DNA of 63,733 bases, counting the filler, from Pelomyxa schiedti (Eukaryota; Protista; Evosea), in assembly GCA_020536535.1 (NCBI GenBank). It is 8 parts of 8 records of this genome, joined end to end, with 100 filler letters (N's around TTAATTAATTAA, not from the genome) between each part and the next. Parts side by side here need not be neighbours in the genome. Positions count along the whole stretch, not along the records: positions 1 to 29,355 come from JAHLWZ010000200.1; 7 more parts are not named here. The stretch is one strand, 5' to 3'. Numbering within the stretch: position 1 is the first letter of the stretch; each line of letters opens with the position of its first letter. The translations under genes were made by a program, and so were the position numbers. Positions 1 through 14,576 of the stretch are shown here, in pieces. The notes under the pieces are model-generated. The model worked only from the letters and a program-made list of their open reading frames with translations. It ran no database searches and was not told where the DNA came from.

Positions 1-867
1 CGATCGCGACGCCGGCGTCGTGCTCTGTGGCCGCGGGGCCTCCTGGTGGCGCGGCGCGAGACGACAGGGCGAGCGTGGCGTCGAGCGTGATCAATATGAT
101 CAACAACAACATGGGGGGCAGTTTTGTGTCATTGCCGTACTGCGCCACTATGCTGGGACTGCTACCTACTTACGCGTTAGTTTTTTTTTCTTCTTCTGTT
201 TCTTTGTTTTGCTCGTTTAACGGTTTTTTTTTTAAAAAAAAAATTACAGATGTCTAACACTATTTTATGGAGTATCATTGTATGGACTTCATCTTCTGGG
301 GGCATGTGCGTTCGTAGTGGAAGCTAAACGAAAATCGAAATCACCTTCTAAAACCCCATTATCAATTACTGAGGTGGGAAATGAGGTTTGTTGATATTAC
401 CTTCACGCAAAGTGTACTGAGGAATGCCCAGGCAATTCCAAGATTTAGTTTTCTAGTCACCCTGGCTGTGGCAATTCATTGCTTTGGCGTTGTGACATAC
501 TTGCTCGTTCTTACAGGTTTGTGACGTATGTACACCAATTTTTTGTGCAACTCCACTCATGCCTCTCAGGAGAAATAATGCCCTATATGTTGCAAGCAAT
601 ATTTCCCATGTATATTCCCAGATTCATATGTATTACTCTGGTGGTGTTACTCCTATCACCATTTGCTTTTGTTGAAAGATTGGAGACACTGATGATTGCC
701 AGGTTTCCTCAACACTCCAAACACCTGAGGCATCTCATTTTAACCCAAAAAAAAAGTGTTGTGGTTGCTGTATCTCTTGGATACACTTTTTTCCTTGTTA
801 TATTTAAATACAACTCTGCCACTGTTCATCCGGATCTTCATTTATTCGCATGGCATTCTAAGAGCCT
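1..867 (+). CDS. Amino-acid transporter (Aa_trans/SLC38-AVT family), partial; near-identical copy of 5061-5935
   Basis: ASVASSVINMINNNMGGSFVSLPY...GL N-terminal motif; same exons and introns as the 4889-6783 gene; cut by the window start and the N gap. Confidence 0.8.
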
Positions 868-967
868 NNNNNNNNNNNNNNNNNNNNNNNNNNNNNNNNN
901 NNNNNNNNNNNNNNNNNNNNNNNNNNNNNNNNNNNNNNNNNNNNNNNNNNNNNNNNNNNNNNNNNNN

Positions 968-1968
968 AGGGTTGTAATCTCCTTATGCATCCTCTTAACG
1001 ATCCCTGGGAGCAAGGATGTGCCACCGGTCAAAACGATGTTGGAGTATGCACGCTGCCTGAGATCAACATTACACGCAGCGATTGAGTTGTAGCAGATCT
1101 CGTGTATGCCAACCTCATGCCTGCCAAGGATTGAGGGCTTGAACAGTGCCTCCGGACACCTGAACCTCTCGTTGCCAACAGTGATGACAGTCCCATCAGG
1201 AAGCTCATAGCTCCGCTCAAGTGACGACGGTTCTGCGCTCATCTCGGCGTCAAAGTCCAGGGCCACGTAGGCGTGCTTCTCCTTGATGTCACGTCCAACC
1301 TCGAGCTGCGAGTTGGTTACGGCCAGGACGCCGCGGCCATAGAGCATGTTCAGCATGTGGTCAGTGAGGTCGCGGCCGGCCAAGTCCTGCCTAAAAGTGC
1401 TGCTGGTGACCACGGCCCCCTCTTCAATCGAGGCGCTACAGGTTACGCCATCGCCGGTGAGCACCACGACTCCAGTGGTTCTGCATGTGGAGTAGAGAGA
1501 CAGAGGCGCCGGAAGGGCAACGAAAAATGCAGGTACGTTGAATTTCTCGAACATGACCTGGGTCATCTTCTCGCGGTTGGCCTTGGGGTTGAGGGGTGCC
1601 TCAGTGACCAGGACTGGGTGCTCCTCTGGTGCAACACGAAGCTCGGTGCAGAGGGCACAGTGTAATACCTTCTCCATGTGGTCCCAGCTGGTTACTATGC
1701 CGTGCTCGATTGGGTAGTTTAGCTTCAGGCAGTTTCGTTTGGAGAATGCCGAGCACCCAACATACAGCTCCGTGTCTACCGAATTAATGGGTCGACCAAC
1801 GATGGCCTGTGTGCAAACGGTGTTACAACAGAAGTATGGGCAGGAAGCGGCACACACAGGGAAAACAGCACGGGGACCGTCGTCGCCTGCGTATCCGGCC
1901 TGACACGTTCCTGTGCCGTTGTCAATAACGATTGCCTGCACTTCTTGTGGTTGTACAGCCGCCGACAT
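968..1968 (-). CDS. Divergent actin-like protein (3' end lost in gap)
   Basis: [77 protein letters not shown]; 51-nt in-frame GT-AG intron at 1807-1857. Confidence 0.92.
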
Positions 1969-4888: not shown

Positions 4889-6783
4889 ATGCACGGCACC
4901 GGCATCGACGCCGACGCGTCTTCCGTCGCGACCACCGTCGACGTTGCCTTCGACACGGCCGGATCTGCAACCGCCGCGTCATCTTCTTCCTCTTCCTCTT
5001 CCTCTTCCTCATCGCTTCCGCCCACGTCGCCCTTCGAAGTGGAAGCATCGGTCTCGCCCACGATCGCGACGCCGGCGTCGTGCTCTGTGGCCGCGGGGCC
5101 TCCTGGTGGCGCGGCGCGAGACGACAGGGCGAGCGTGGCGTCGAGCGTGATCAATATGATCAACAACAACATGGGGGGCAGCTTTGTGTCATTGCCGTAC
5201 TGCGCCACTATGCTGGGACTGCTACCTACTTACGCGTTAGTTTTTTTTTTCTTCTTCCGTTTCTTTGTTTTGCTGGTTTAACGATTTTTTTTAAAAAACA
5301 AAAAAAAAATTACAGATGTCTAACACTATTTTATGGAGTATCATTGTATGGACTTCATCTTCTGGGGGCATGTGCGTTTGTAGTGGAAGCTAAACGAAAA
5401 TCGAAATCACCTTCTAAAACCCCATTATCAATTACTGAGGTGGGAAATGAGGTTTGTTTGATATTACCTTCACGCAAAGTGTACTGAGGAATGCCCAGGC
5501 AATTCCAAGATTTAGTTTTCTAGTCACCCTGGCTGTGGCAGTTCATTGCTTTGGCGTTGTGACATACTTGCTCGTTCTTACAGGTTTGTGACGTATGTAC
5601 ACCAATTGTTTGTGCAACTCCACTCATGCCTTACAGGAGAAATAATGCCCTACATGTTGCAAGCAATATTTCCCATGTATATTCCCAGATTCATATGTAT
5701 TACTCTGGTAGTGTTACTCCTATCACCATTTGCTTTTGTTGAAAGATTGGAGACACTGATGATTGCCAGGTTTCCTCGACACTCCAAACACCTGAGGCAT
5801 CTCATTTTAACCCAAAAAAAAAAGTGTTGTGGTTGCTGTATCTCTTGGATACACTTTTTTCCTTGTTATATTTAAATACAACTCTGCCACTGTTCATCCG
5901 GATCTTCATTTATTCGCATGGCATTCTAAGAGCCTGTTTGCATTACCATTGATGGCCTTTTCCTTCGACTTTCATGAAAATGTGACTTCCACAGCATAAT
6001 ATATTACAATTAATGAGGTTATTAAATTTCCTTTGAACCAATTTGCCCAATTACTTCTTGTAGTTCTTCACAGTTTACAGTGAGCTTGGGGCTCCACACC
6101 AAAAAATCAGAGCAAATGCAGTTGCGTGGATAACCCAGACTCTATCCCTCATTATTTTTGTTGCCCTTATTACTCTTGTATACTGTACGTTTGGAGATAA
6201 TACCCATGTGGACTTCCTTACAAACTGTATCGCCCACCGCTAACATTCAACCTATTCATATAACTTCAGATAATATCTCGATCACTGTTGTATTTTGCCA
6301 GTGGTTGTTCTTAGTATCAGTTATATGTTCAATCCCAATGCTGTTCTATCCAACAGCACAACTTATTACAAACCTCATCAACCACAAACTTCCAGACTGG
6401 CACCCTCAAAACAAGAGGCGGACCATCATTGTGTGGAGTTTCCTCAAGTATTATCACAAGCACTAATTCATCTTTCCCAGGGAACCTTACTTGTGAGCTC
6501 GTGCACATTAGCCATCGTTTGCAAAGAGCTCGATGTGGCATTCGGCTTAATGGGTGCTGTGGGGTCATCCACCATATGCTACATACTTCCACCCATCCTC
6601 TACCTCAACCTTGTGCTATTTCCCCAAACGCAGCAGTACAGTGATGAAGAAGAGCAACAATCAGACATCATTCACCACTCTCCATGGCGAGACAGGAGGG
6701 TGATAGCACCATGCTGTTTACTCGTTTTTGGTGTTGCCTTCCTGGTCACTTGTGTATCCAACATCCTGTACCACATTTTGTGA
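4889..6783 (+). CDS. Amino-acid transporter (Aa_trans/SLC38-AVT family), multi-exon
   Basis: SSVINMINNNMGGSFVSLPY, multiple hydrophobic TM exons, FGLMGAVGSSTICYILPPILY; stop at 6783. Confidence 0.88.
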
Positions 6784-8623: not shown

Positions 8624-9761
8624 CTAGAAGCACTTGCGCACAATGGCTGGCCCAGACTCGTTGTACTCCTCCTTGCTGATCCACATCTGCTGGAACGTGC
8701 TGAGCGAGGCAAGGATTGATCCTCCGATCCACACAGAGTACTTGCGCTCAGGTGGGGCGAAGACATTGATCTTCACTGTTGGTGCTAGGGCTGTCATCTC
8801 CTTATGCAGCCTGTCTGCAATCCCTGGGAACATGGAAGTGCCGCCAGAAAGAACGATGCTGCCGTACAGGTCCTTGCGGATATCCACGTCGCACTTCATG
8901 ATGGAGTGGTAGCATGTCTCGTGGATCCCGGACACCTCGAGGCCCAGTAACGATGGACGGAACAGGGCCTCTGGGCACCTGAACCTCTCGTTCCCGATGG
9001 TGATCACTTGCCCGTCGGGAAGCTCGTAGGTCCTCTCGAGGGACGAGGTGTCGGCGGCGGTAGTCATCTCGGCGTCGAAGTCCGGGGCGACGTAGGCGAG
9101 ATTCTCCTTGATGTCTCGCGCGATCTCGCGCTCCGCGGCTGTCGTGAACGAGTGGCCGCGCTCGGCGAGGATCTTCATCATGTAGTCGGTGAGATCGCGG
9201 CCCGCGAGATCTCGCCTGAGGACGGCGCTCGGGAGTGCGTAGCCGTCGTATACCGGAGTGGCGTGGGTGACGCCGTCGCCAGTGTCCAGCGCGATGCCGA
9301 CGGTTCGACCAGAGGCGCAGAGGGACAGGACGGCCTGGACGCCAAGGTACATTGCCGGGACGTTGAATGCATCGAACATGACCCGGGTCAGCTTCTCGCG
9401 GCTGGCCTTGGGGTTGAGGGGTGTCTCGGTGAGCAGAACTGGGCGCTCCTCGGGGGCGACACGAAGCTCGCTGTGGAAGGCGTGGTGCCATACCTTCTCC
9501 ATGTGGTCCCAGTTGGTGACGAGGCCGTGCTCGATTGGGTGGCTGATCGCGACCATGCCTCCTAGGTGGCACAGGGCCGCTTGTCCCACGAAGGTGTCGG
9601 TGCCGTGCATTCCTACAATGGACTTATGGAGTGGTGAGGGTACGAGAACAGGGATGAAACGAAACTGGAAAAACAGCACGAGGGGCAGAATCGCCAGCGA
9701 ATCCTGCCTTGCACATTCCAGACCCGTTGTCAAAAACGACAGCCGATGCATGTGCGTCCAT
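8624..9761 (-). CDS. ACT: Actin (divergent N-terminus, D-loop deleted)
   Basis: [30 protein letters not shown], 43-nt intron 9623-9665, then canonical actin to [41 protein letters not shown]. Confidence 0.95.
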
Positions 9762-9924
9762 GACTCGCCAGGCCCGTAACGTTCGGTTGATTTCTTCCCC
9801 GAAATCACCACCAGAAAAACAGAAGAATCAAACATGCAGGTGAATGGTGTCAGCCTTGGCTGTAGTGAATCGCTAACTGTTTTAATCCAGCCTACTGGCG
9901 CACCATCCAACGGCACAGTTGCTC

Positions 9925-12571
9925 ATGACGTCACGCCCCCGCCGTGTGCGTGCAGTGCCACTGTTGGCCGCGGCGAGAGGAGGTTCTTTGCAATGAAGTT
10001 CTCTTCTGAGGGCAATGTGCTCCAGTCATTTAGGGACTCTCAGTACGCAACGCCGTTGAGGAAATCTAGAGAGCTCGACCAGCAACCACATCGTATTTTC
10101 AATGCTGCAATCGATGTGTGTACCAACTTTTTTTTTGTTTTTGTTTTTGCTTGGAGTAACGTAAAAACAAAGAGCGGGAATGAAGTTGTTTTGATAGCAT
10201 GTGTTACGGGATGCAAGCAATTCTTCGGGTATGCAGTTATGCCGTCGAAGATCGTCGAGCCAGATTTATCTTCGTACCAAGGAAAGTGGCTCCCGCCTTT
10301 TACATTGAAGTGGTGCTGCAAGTGAGTTTCCAATCCAAACAGTGCCGGTCAAATTCAAACTGCTTTCAGGCTTACCACAGCATATAAATTTTCCGTCAAT
10401 TACTCCGATTTCGATTCCCGTATAAACGCACTGGATAAGTGGGGCCACCCGGTCACATTAACTCAAAACTGCCAAGAAATAGATACTGCAAGTGGTGCCT
10501 TACTGTGTGAGGCAATGGATAATGCGGCTTCCCAACAAAAATTATTTGAGACGGCTAAGAGACAGTACTTCACCGTTCCTGTGCGCTTACTCTGACACCG
10601 AACAGGGAGGAAGAAAGTCAAATAGAGCATTTTTACAAAACAAATGCAAGTGGCTCTCATCTATGGGACGGATTCCTTGAACGCCTTACTGCTGTTGGCA
10701 AAACTATTTTTGCCTGTCATGTAAGTGCGCATATATTTCCTTCCATTTAATCAATATCCACGAAACAAGTAGGTTGGTTCAAGAGCTTATAACCTTCAAG
10801 TAGAAACAAGTGATATTGACCTTATGGCAGTCGTGGCCTTTCCTGTGAAAGTGATTGTAGGCTCTCTGCCTGAACCAGTAAAACTTGTTATGAAAAATAG
10901 TGACAACATCAAGGTAACATTCAACCTTGCGCAAATGAGAACGTTACAATCCTTAGCCAGACTACACAGTAAATGAAGCACTAGCATTCTCAAATCTTAT
11001 TATAGCTGGAGATAGCAGATGCATTGAAATGTTTTTCCATGATCCAGGTCCTTCCTTCACTTTCGCTTAATCTTGATCACTAATCTTCTGCAGGCTCGGA
11101 GGCAGTAGTTTACTGCAGCGAGGAATGGTGCAAACTTCTTCCACACAGAGACTTATTCTTAACTCCAAAAATGCTCGAGAAGTATCTCCACGAAGTAGAT
11201 GGAATAAAGGGGTTTAAGAAACTGAATACCCTCACACTTTCAGTTTCCGAAGCAGATCCTGACTCTAAAGTTGTTGATATGTACCATTAAGATGTATTTA
11301 ACAACTTCAGGTAAAATTGTACAAATTGTTGTACATACTACACCGCCATTTGTTACTTGCTAAGCGGCTCGTAAATGCAGCCGCCCCAGACTCACTGAAA
11401 ATGGGGCCAAAGACCCCGTTCTCTGTCTTCTTTCGAGCTGACTCTGAAGAATATAACTTTCTTCAGAAAGTAAGACATGGTAGTATTCCATTCCAGGAAT
11501 TGAGCCAGGTTTAATTAGATGGAAATTTGCTGTTAAATTTAATTCCCCCAGATGCTTAGAGATGAGTTCACTAGGCTTACTAACATCCATAAAACCTGGA
11601 CTGACTGTGGGACAGACCCCACTCCTTTAGTTAATGAATGGCTTGTCAATGTCGTGCGGATACCAGAAATCCAACTGGCTCCTACAACACAATTTGTACA
11701 GTCACCAGAGCAGACGACCGCTAGAACAACGGTGACGTTGAGTACTCCCTCATCTCAAGAACAGGTGCCTCACCTAGAAGACATAAGTGCGATAAATGCA
11801 ACTCTACCTTCCGGTTCGAAATTACTCTATCTGGTCAACACGCAATTGACACAGTATCTCGTCTGTGGGACGAAGTACGCTGGTGTCTATGCTGCTTCAA
11901 CAAAATCTCAATTATCCATTCATCCATCACCCGAGTGCATCAAGAGCAGTTCCGCAACGATATATGAAGCTGAAAGGCTCTGCCAACTTCTGGCAACAGC
12001 AAACCCGAATGCCGTAGCATTGCTATTTGCTCGGAGTTCAGCAATTTTGGTTACATCCATGGAGTTTGACTTGATTTTATCCCGGCGGGAGCATTTTGTA
12101 TCCAAAGAAGTTGTAGACCGCATTCATCAACAAACAATGCAGCAGCAAGGGCGACCTGTTCATAAGCCCAGATTTGGGCAGCACCAACAGCAACAGCAGA
12201 AGCAAAACCAAGTACAAAAGTACACCCACCAAATGTCACAGCTGAATACCTCTGAGCCTGAGAAAATTCTTCCCACACCAAACTCCCCAGTCTCATCATC
12301 AGCGACTACATCATCCCCCAGCTCCCCATCAATACCTGCGTCAACCACAACAGCTTCAACTTCAACGGATTCAGTTACAACAGTAGCAACAAGAGCCGAT
12401 GGAATTGCGGAAACGGTGCAATCAACCACCGCAAATGATGGGGAGCTACTCCAGTGTGCAGCAAGAGTAACATCCACTACAGGAAAACTCCCTCTCACCA
12501 AGGACATTGACTTAGCCCCACTGACAGAATGGCTCTTGTGGCTCCGGGTTACCTTGTGCACAGCTTCTTGA
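9925..12571 (+). CDS. YTH-domain protein fused to two RlaP-like (PF10127-type) pol-beta nucleotidyltransferase domains, multi-exon; start uncertain
   Basis: YTH: RFFAMKFSSEGNVLQS...VVLIACVTGCKQFFGYAVM...GKWLPPFTLKW...NALDKWGHPVTLTQNCQEIDTASGALLC. NTase1: IFACHVGSRAYNLQVETSDIDLMAV...PDYTVNEA...CSEEWCKLLPHRDLFL. NTase2: YAGVYAAS...IYEAERLCQLLATANPNAVALLF...REHFVSK. Confidence 0.8.
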
Positions 12572-12825
12572 ATTAGTTAAATATTTAATACAAATACCAA
12601 CTATCCCTTTCTGGGGGTTCACACTCTGACACTTTTCTTCTTAGCACTGGCTCTAAGTCCCAAATTGTATTGCACTCTTTTCCAATTTCTAGAACCGTTT
12701 GGTACACACCATTTCCCTGGCACATTTCGTACTGGAGTCACGGAATCACGGCGTAAAAAAAAAAAAAGCCGAAGATAAGGCGAACCCAACAGATCCCACA
12801 AATTAAAGAAAGAGTAACGCGAAGT

Positions 12826-14576
12826 ATGGCAACGGGTGGGGTTACGTCGTGGAGTGGGAGCTGGATGCGGAGATCCAGCTCTTTTGTGAGTGTTGCGAGC
12901 AGTGTCGGCACCTCTGCCCTGCTGCAACACACTTCACGTAGCAAGATCGCTAAACGAAGTTTCACTTCGGGCTCAAGTGGCTCTGTATGGCACAGAAAAT
13001 CCTCGAGCGATGTGATACGCAACAGTACGCAGTTCGACTTCAGCCCGTTAGAAAGGTTTTTATGGGGGGACTCCACCCCAAGAAAACTTCCACTCCCAGC
13101 AAAACCCCTGGAACTGGACGAGACGCAACTGGCAGCATTGGTTGGCCACTTACCGTAGTCGTTTCTTTGACTCATTTGTTGTACAGCTGAGCACGACTGA
13201 TGAGCGTGTGGCGTCCAGCATGCACGAGTACGCTAAACGCGTTACTGACGCCATATTTGGCGACAAGGTGTGGTTCAGAGGAATTGTTGAGTTTTCCAAC
13301 GTCTGTGAAAAAAGTTGCCACTATTGCGGAATAGGGAGAGGGGTACTCTCAATCGCCATCTTCTTCTTTTTAACATGCCCAAAGGTTTCGAAAGTAAAAA
13401 GATATACTATACCAAAGAATGAAATTGTTGATTGTGCCCTGTTTGCACATAATCTGAAAATGGGTACAGTAATGCTACAATCTGGGGAGATATCCCACCA
13501 AGCACGAATTTCCTGGTTATCAGATGTCGTGAAAGAGATAGTATCTCAGACTTCACAAAGGTTACAGTGATGTTCTGCATGTTATTCTTACCTTTTTCTT
13601 TAGTGATCCTGAGGGCCGAGCCATTCGAGTCGCCTTATCTGTAGGCGAGCTCGCTCTTCCACAATACAAGCAACTCTATGATGCTGGAGCTCGCAGGTTG
13701 CAAAAATTTTCTTCGCCTACCTGTCTAACTTTTCTTAGATATCTTTTACGAATAGAATCCTCCAATCCAGATCTTTATAGTAAGATGCACCCTCAAGATG
13801 GCTCACATACCTGGGACAAAAGGCGGCAGTGTCTGAATAATCTCGCCGAGGTAACTCCTCTTCGTTTTGTCACTTGTCCTGATCTCCACTCCAGGCAGGA
13901 TTCCAGCTTGGGACTGGAGTTCTCATTGGCGTTCCAGGACAGAGATATTTGGACTTAGCTCGAGATCTCCTGTTTTTCCGTGAGATTGAAGCCGACATGA
14001 TTGGCATGGGCCCATACATTGTCGAAAAGGACACTCCTATGGGAATGCTTTGGGCAAGTCTCCACTCTGGGGAAACTGAGGAGCAGATTGTTGCCTACAA
14101 AAAGTGGTTATTTGAGCTCAGCACTAGGTAGAGGCAAGTTAAATGCAAAACCTGTCTTACAAGTCCCTAGGATGGTTTCTCTTGCTCGGATCCTCCTAGG
14201 AAATGTAAATATTGCATCTACAACTGCATTGGACACACTTAATCCAATCGGCCGAATCATCACCCTTAGTACTGCACCAGTACCGCAATGACCCAATCTA
14301 ACTATTCCCCTAAAAAGACAGAGGAGCAAATATTCTCATGCCCATCTTGACGCCGACAAAGTACCGTGAACAGTACCAGCTATACCAGGTGACACGGAAT
14401 TCTATGGGTTAGATAGTACTAACCCTACGGTACAGGGAAAACCCTCCATTCACGAGAATGCTGAAGAGTCCCGCCAAAAGATGATTGCACGCGTTTTAGC
14501 CGCTGGTAAACAATTGGCTACGGACCCTGGTGATCCCCCTCATTTTGCTCAGAAGACGTCAAAATCCAAACACTGA
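12826..14576 (+). CDS. hydE: [FeFe]-hydrogenase H-cluster maturase HydE (radical SAM), multi-exon, with Ser/Arg-rich N-terminal extension
   Basis: VWFRGIVEFSNVCEKSCHYCGI (CxxxCxxC), TVMLQSGE, LSVGE, RYLLRIESSNPDLY, GTGVLIGVPGQ, DMIGMGPY..DTP, NIASTTAL, GANILMPILTP.KYREQYQLYQGKP. Confidence 0.92.

Follow-up and report, generated by a model that had tools for sequence, protein, structure and literature searches.

One gene of Pelomyxa schiedti joins a divergent YTH domain to an apparently active RlaP nucleotidyltransferase and its degenerate duplicate: a candidate targeted RNA 3'-end transferase

To our knowledge, proteins with a YTH domain are otherwise known as adaptors that recruit other factors, the exception being YTHDC2, in which YTH and an RNA helicase are coupled in one chain. 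The enzymes TUT4 and TUT7, for their part, carry an inactive nucleotidyltransferase (NTase) module beside an active one in a single polypeptide, where the inactive module serves in the recognition of substrates or partners, their product being a short 3' tail. RlaP (RNA ligase-associated Pol-beta) enzymes (PF10127; for example, PfRlaP of P. fluorescens and NrdC.11 of phage T4), characterised as accessories of RNA repair in bacteria, are a third point of reference, and a December 2025 preprint reports that two Pseudomonas members, PfRlaP and PaRlaP, the only ones of known activity, add one or two nucleoside monophosphates (NMP) to the 3'-OH, and not the 3'-phosphate, of RNA (PMC12776372). These two enzymes modify RNA only, not DNA, prefer broken tRNA mimics, require three conserved aspartates and form a cleft from their NTase and helical domains together with a C-terminal helix that closes it (PMC12776372). 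In bacteria, RlaP assists the ligase RtcB. Here we describe Pelo_2589, a gene of the anaerobic amoeba Pelomyxa schiedti (assembly GCA_020536535.1) that brings elements of all of these together, and that has an orthologue with the same architecture on a metagenome contig. It lies in a window of 63,733 nucleotides, by which we mean the whole stretch of DNA analysed, eight parts of eight records joined by filler; positions 1-29355, which hold the gene, are one contig (C200) of the 52.4-Mb assembly of 5337 contigs in which our genome searches were made. By analogy with the described enzymes, we think it somewhat probable that this one intact gene encodes a YTH-targeted RlaP 3'-end transferase with a dead partner domain. 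The features on which this reading draws are as follows.

9834-12571, plus strand: whole gene Pelo_2589, 788 amino acids (aa); the spliced translation equals the public protein exactly
9978-10520, plus strand: YTH domain (aa 49-194), with introns 1 and 2 inside it; found with Pfam PF04146
10655-11674, plus strand: first RlaP-type domain (aa ~226-490), made up of NTase core, helical domain and C-terminal helix; found with Pfam, hhalign, a hidden Markov model (HMM) and AlphaFold
10773-10820, plus strand: GS-x9-SDxD motif, with G249-S250 (10776-10781), D261 (10812-10814) and D263 (10818-10820); read directly and aligned to RlaP
10960-10962, plus strand: D296, candidate third catalytic carboxylate; aligns with a nearly invariant RlaP Asp and is kept in the orthologue
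11822-12196, plus strand: second RlaP-like domain (aa ~540-664, plus C-terminal helix); found with the family HMM, hhalign and tblastn
12140-12484, plus strand: Gln/Ser/Thr-rich low-complexity insert (aa 646-760, ~115 aa) within the second domain; mostly missing from the orthologue
12497-12568, plus strand: conserved C-terminal segment, ID...L..WL...R; from the two-species alignment

The first of the two enzyme domains belongs, as far as its alignments and a structure model can tell, to the RlaP family, and it is apparently active, with all catalytic residues intact. The initial annotation of this stretch had reported an intact GS-x9-SDxD at 10773-10820, and the motif sits exactly there; indeed, G249, S250, D261, D263 and D296 all align to nearly invariant catalytic columns of RlaP and are conserved in the orthologue. 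The same annotation had named PF10127, and this assignment has been borne out by Pfam (24.2 bits, gathering cut-off 23), by hhalign against five viral RlaP proteins (98.4% probability, E 5e-15) and by an AlphaFold model that matches models of PF10127 clusters (TM 0.71-0.84). In addition, a profile of the two orthologues matched P0006, a PF10127 protein of a Rhabdochlamydiaceae bacterium (hhalign 97.4%, 110 columns), and scans of viral contigs (IMG/VR) matched 145 stretches and yielded 80 loci (L019-L098) of the same RlaP subfamily as P0006; the four viral proteins that we sampled have PF10127 scores of 49-87 bits. Against an HMM of 57 phage RlaP proteins, Pelo_2589 reaches 81.4 bits in total, 40.3 of them at residues 241-355, together with a weak colinear match of residues 429-464 to the helical domain, and the maximum in 2000 shuffles was 6.9 bits. 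The language-model features of residues 225-500 tell the same story, their neighbours all being PF10127 clusters (score 0.96). Finally, the AlphaFold model built on a 63-row alignment (pLDDT 87.4, pTM 0.83; a model from a 7-row alignment, at pLDDT 49, was discarded) predicts an NTase domain and a helical domain closed by a C-terminal helix, and this superposes over 226 residues, at 2.9 A and TM 0.71/0.84, on the model of a 229-aa actinobacterial RlaP cluster, all of whose members (100%) are PF10127, both of the compared structures being predictions. The domain is thus like described RlaP enzymes in its GS...SDxD with a third Asp, in its similar size (~265 aa), in its modelled core, helical domain and closing helix (TM 0.84 to the 229-aa cluster model) and in its NPN-type and R(D)LFLS motifs, whereas Pelo_2589 differs from them in being eukaryotic, interrupted by introns, furnished with an N-terminal YTH domain and a dead C-terminal duplicate, and very divergent (24 bits in Pfam).

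Does such an enzyme have to act on RNA? The solved structures that most resemble the model are two-domain pol-beta transferases of other kinds, namely the aminoglycoside nucleotidyltransferases ANT(4'), AAD(9) and LinB, the Hailong oligodeoxyadenylate synthase HalB, the adenylyltransferases DrrA and GlnE, and 3c18, and these lend themselves to a different account, in which the transferase has a protein, small molecule or DNA as its acceptor, or makes a nucleotide signal, and the YTH domain serves for regulation or localisation. There are precedents for this among other pol-beta NTases that share the two-domain fold, and the activity of RlaP itself has been shown for the two Pseudomonas enzymes only (PMC12776372). 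However, the profiles, the language-model features and the matches of the predicted structure all put the domain in PF10127 and not in those families, PfRlaP and PaRlaP left DNA unmodified (PMC12776372), and RNA suggests itself as the substrate because the enzyme is fused to an RNA-binding fold, so that we rate a non-RNA acceptor as distinctly improbable and keep to an RNA substrate in what follows.

The second RlaP-like domain is, judged by its alignment, a duplicated RlaP that has lost every catalytic residue. A copy without GS and DxD had been reported at ~11815-12125, and it was recovered at ~11822-12196, where residues 581-664 score 35.1 bits with the 57-protein HMM (shuffle maximum 6.9, n=2000) and a two-species profile matches RlaP proteins by hhalign at 94.9% (E 4.3e-8, 94 columns). 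The same profile matches the first copy at E 5.8e-5, and a tblastn cross-match joins the first copy of Pelomyxa to the second copy of the orthologue at E 1.3e-6. The GVY, YEA..LL..NPNA..LLFA and R..F.SK blocks are kept, the NPNA lying nearer to the family consensus than its first-copy counterpart, GDSRC; GS is gone, G555 and K557 stand at the DxD positions, and S583 (Lys in the orthologue) replaces the third carboxylate. By eye only, the conserved C-terminal segment can be likened to a helix segment of the first domain (..LVNEWLVNVVR), and exon 9 used alone as a query returned no homologues and no usable atlas neighbours. The initial description of tandem NTases therefore holds as to two copies and fails as to their being directly in tandem, since a Ser/Thr/Gln-rich linker separates them and an insert of ~115 aa interrupts the second. 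We think that the second domain is most likely a substrate-binding or scaffolding pseudo-enzyme partner. TUT4 and TUT7 are like Pelo_2589 in joining active and inactive NTase modules in one chain, and differ in that their NTases are of PAP/Cid1 type rather than RlaP, the order of the modules is the opposite and zinc knuckles take the place of YTH; no sequence relationship between them and Pelo_2589 was detected.

The N-terminal half of the protein had been read as a full YTH-like domain at ~9975-10520, and both Pfam and a profile search of the Protein Data Bank (PDB) agree. PF04146 scores 50.9 bits (gathering score 22.1) over residues 50-194 and profile positions 2-135 of 135, corresponding to 9978-10520, with 35.9 bits on exons 1-2 alone and 39.6 bits in a six-frame search of the genome. 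All 33 of the 33 PDB sequences matched by the two-orthologue profile are YTH domains, the best being 4u8t (E 4.6e-6); MRB1/Pho92, CPSF30 and YTHDF1, which are true readers of N6-methyladenosine (m6A), lead the matches, and Mmi1 of S. pombe is among the weakest (E 0.7-1.3). The domain nevertheless looks very divergent in sequence: phmmer with the single sequence of this region matched no solved YTH structure in the PDB, and the exhaustive single-sequence search of 1.84 billion representatives returned no canonical YTH protein. Like YTHDF1-3, YTHDC1, Pho92/MRB1 and plant CPSF30-L, Pelo_2589 has a full-length YTH domain by Pfam and by profile against solved structures; like YTHDC2, it couples YTH to an enzyme that acts on RNA. 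It differs from these proteins in that the partner is a nucleotidyltransferase and not a helicase or a low-complexity effector region, and in its tryptophan cage, of which Pelomyxa has an altered version and the orthologue has lost the greater part. One other YTH gene was found in the genome (C116:68985-69453, or L008 1501-1966), of YTHDF type and with Trp at all three cage positions, which makes it the candidate for the genome's ordinary m6A reader; no BLAST similarity was detected between it and the window gene.

What the YTH domain might recognise is of particular interest. In YTHDC1 the cage is formed by W377, W428 and L439, and Asn stands at the position of YTHDF1 D401; in YTHDF2, Ala substitutions of the corresponding Trp residues abolish m6A binding. 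When the domains are aligned, the counterparts of YTHDF1 W411, W465 and W470 are Tyr, Ser (with Tyr one residue on) and Trp in Pelomyxa and Trp, Pro and Arg in the orthologue, and D401 corresponds to Asn and Tyr, respectively. On this alignment the three-residue aromatic cage of an m6A reader is not intact in either protein, and since the orthologue has Pro and Arg, the cage is not conserved in this small family; the Pelomyxa protein could conceivably bind m6A, and its orthologue probably does not. These residues bear directly on a stricter reading, in which YTH reads m6A or another base modification through its aromatic cage and so directs 3'-nucleotidylation to modified RNAs. Two of the three cage positions are aromatic in Pelomyxa (Tyr for W411, Trp for W470), with a Tyr beside the third and the Asn at the D401 position; the best profile matches are true m6A readers, YTHDF1-3 among them; and genes of the MT-A70 methyltransferase family are present in the genome, although these are not assigned to RNA as opposed to DNA methylation. 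The Ser at W465 in Pelomyxa, the Pro and Arg for W465 and W470 and the Tyr for D401 in the orthologue, and the loss of binding in the YTHDF2 mutants all speak the other way, as does Mmi1, whose YTH fold binds unmethylated RNA through another surface. We therefore regard modification reading through the cage as unlikely. Indeed, Mmi1 is like Pelo_2589 in that the YTH fold is not bound to m6A dependence, and it offers a precedent for sequence-directed RNA targeting; it is different in recruiting decay factors and having no enzymatic domain. One report indicates that the function of the YTH domain of Mmi1 need not rest on m6A (PMC6005420).

All of this presupposes one gene. The initial annotation had joined the broken reading frames by GT-AG splicing, and this model stood up: in the three-frame translation of 9900-12700 the coding stretches switch frame at short GT-AG intervals, and nine exons (9834-10115, 10173-10321, 10370-10564, 10606-10720, 10773-10913, 10957-11047, 11094-11269, 11311-11508 and 11552-12571, with the stop codon at 12569-12571) give a translation identical to Pelo_2589. 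The eight introns, of 41-57 nt and all (8/8) GT-AG, lie as follows, together with the one part of the annotated model that we doubt.

10116-10172, plus strand: intron 1, GT-AG
10322-10369, plus strand: intron 2, GT-AG
10565-10605, plus strand: intron 3, GT-AG, 41 nt, phase 2, which joins the YTH half to the enzyme half
10721-10772, plus strand: intron 4, GT-AG
10914-10956, plus strand: intron 5, GT-AG
11048-11093, plus strand: intron 6, GT-AG
11270-11310, plus strand: intron 7, GT-AG
11509-11551, plus strand: intron 8, GT-AG
9834-9977, plus strand: first 48 residues of the annotated protein, which may not be real; the orthologue starts only 6 residues before the conserved RFF strand

Such a structure is in keeping with the published P. 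schiedti genome, which has 7.43 introns per gene (98.4% GT-AG) and whose gene models come from Augustus, improved with PASA and EVM from single-cell transcriptomes (PMC8887013). The NCBI label of the encoded protein is 'hypothetical protein Pelo_2589 [Pelomyxa schiedti]', and YTH is the sole domain given in its precomputed annotation. An alternative intron 1 at 10118-10156 was dropped for the annotated 10116-10172, which is backed by a phase-0 intron in the orthologue.

It could of course be objected that the fusion is an artefact of annotation, in which a YTH gene was merged with a neighbouring NTase gene, or that the whole is a decaying pseudogene, since an ab initio model could lack transcript support at this locus. 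The orthologue speaks against this. Reached through P0002, a protein fragment from the exhaustive search, it lies on a 497-kb metagenome contig, on a part of which (L012) tblastn of Pelo_2589 gives colinear matches across the full protein, and its spliced open frame of 654 codons is 44% identical to Pelo_2589. All eight of its introns share position and phase with those of Pelomyxa, including the counterpart of the linking intron 3 (10681-10717 in L012), although its sixth (11148-11186), placed by eye, is GC-AG where Pelomyxa has GT-AG. That this second organism has the same architecture with every intron in place makes it unlikely that two genes were merged in the model. In addition, retention of intron 3 would bring in a TGA at 10593, and the enzyme half could not be made as a separate protein, because exon 4 contains no ATG and the first in-frame Met of that half is M265, which comes after both GS and DxD. 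Decay of the gene is also hard to reconcile with a frame that is intact in the orthologue and in two alleles. The locus is present as unspliced genomic contigs in four DNA runs, all from one sample and study, and so is not contamination. A second allele, present in three of these runs, has 12 substitutions over 9600-12800 (3.2 kb): five are synonymous, four non-synonymous and outside the domain cores, two intronic, and one (9641) lies beyond the gene. Its sole indel is an in-frame deletion of 3 nt at 11676. We hold an artefact to be very improbable, and what we describe is, to all appearances, a single, intact, intron-rich nuclear gene, its splicing being inferred and not observed. As for its start, no ATG is present between 9834 and 9993 in the reference allele, and the annotated start lies 72 nt from the ATG (9761, minus strand) of a divergent actin gene; the second allele has ATG for ACG at 9934, which gives a start codon nearer to the YTH domain.

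Several observations count against the transferase that we propose, and they are best considered together. The RlaP cut-off of Pfam was passed narrowly, and by profile positions 19-55 alone; the AlphaFold model leans to the RlaP fold because its input alignment was built from RlaP proteins; and the matches in the PDB are modest (Foldseek TM ~0.4, VIA-align Z 7.5-8.7) and all fall in other NTase families, no RlaP structure having been matched in the PDB copy searched. There is also no BLAST similarity between the window gene and the four PF10127 paralogues of the genome. All four of the runs found carry the locus unspliced, as genomic DNA. Finally, the cage of the YTH domain differs between the two orthologues.

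How, then, might the protein work? The YTH domain would be the RNA-targeting module that picks the RNA, the first RlaP domain would extend the 3'-OH of this bound RNA by one or a few nucleotides, the dead duplicate may help to hold that RNA, and the outcome would be the 3'-end repair or marking of a selected class of RNA. What makes nucleotidylation at RNA 3' ends plausible is the addition of one or two NMP to an RNA 3'-OH by bacterial RlaP. The initial annotation had gone further and proposed a modification-guided RNA tailing enzyme: its architecture has held, through the gene model, the introns of the orthologue, the profiles and the structure model, and RNA-end nucleotidylation is reasonable by analogy with RlaP, while guidance by m6A is doubtful, the cage being unconserved. 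A bolder version of mark-guided 3'-end editing or repair can also be drawn, in which YTH reads a mark (m6A in Pelomyxa; in its relative, something else or a motif in the sequence) and hands the RNA to RlaP, with the dead duplicate forming an intramolecular pseudo-dimer that shapes the choice of substrate; we find this version doubtful. The genome contains an RtcB ligase gene, on another contig, and MT-A70 methyltransferase genes. Unlike RlaP genes, the window gene is not beside an RNA ligase gene, its neighbours being an actin gene and an open reading frame (ORF) with a CX3CX2C motif, and this missing neighbourhood carries little weight because operon logic does not apply to a eukaryote.

Some further observations concern the wider RlaP family. 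Proteins of the phage RlaP subfamily, to which P0006 belongs, measure ~310-400 aa, with an insert of ~130 aa that separates their NTase core from the helical domain; hhalign of the Pelomyxa helical domain with the C-terminus of P0006 gave no match, and a search of bacterial genomes with P0006 for related loci returned nothing. The four other PF10127 loci of the P. schiedti genome lie on contigs C1267, C1531, C816 and C1041, none of them shared with a YTH match; the first three, of which C1267 and C1531 look nearly identical, fit the RlaP profile far better than the window gene, and C1041 falls just below the cut-off. Their alignment with P0006 was unreliable and was not used. A match from the metagenome scan, L014, was rejected as an orthologue, being a prokaryotic MNT/HEPN pair that was picked up through a shared ETSDIDLM motif only; on its sediment contig (26-3436), a 196-aa protein with a winged helix-turn-helix (wHTH) and an NTase overlaps a gene that looks like HEPN, between genes that look like cas3 and cas4, all three judged by eye.

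The surroundings of the gene can be described briefly. The divergent actin gene upstream (8624-9761, minus strand) is split by a short intron and is the second in 29 kb, the other lying at 838-1968 (minus strand; Pfam Actin, 308 bits), and both fall within GC-rich stretches (56-60% against a background of 39-47%). Downstream, the ORF at 13142-13570 (plus strand) has its CX3CX2C motif as C-EKS-C-HY-C, preceded by EFSN; we take it to resemble a radical-SAM enzyme of HydE/biotin-synthase type, and Pfam run on this exon alone gave no match at E <= 0.001. An exon at 6295-6783 (plus strand) matches the Aa_trans family of amino-acid transporters (30 bits), and Rfam found no match across the entire window. 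L012, with the orthologue, and the window have no neighbouring genes in common, a SIP1/gemin2-like gene lying upstream in the former.

Is this a new kind of protein? The initial annotation knew of no characterised protein with this architecture, and we found no description of one either, a verdict that extends as far as the searches made. Full-length Pelo_2589 matched itself only among 5.8 billion proteins; the exhaustive search with the YTH piece returned Pelo_2589, the orthologue fragment P0002 and a spurious repeat protein (P0003); and in the literature we found no paper with both YTH and PF10127/RlaP, nor any on a fusion of YTH with a nucleotidyltransferase. The domains are of known kinds, and it is the combination of YTH with an active and a dead RlaP that appears to be new; further YTH-RlaP fusions with a canonical YTH domain could have escaped searches of protein libraries.

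For now the practical reach of the finding is limited, with only two known sequences, both from organisms that are not tractable. If our reading is true, however, this would be the first YTH domain to deliver RNA directly to a 3'-end nucleotidyltransferase, and a compact, testable model of the way in which terminal transferases obtain their specificity from RNA recognition modules. Should m6A not be its ligand, the YTH domain would still be a useful natural example of the YTH fold reused for another one. And in either case, an enzyme family that is mostly bacterial and phage-borne has been rebuilt in an amoeba, where it was duplicated, half-inactivated, fused and invaded by introns.

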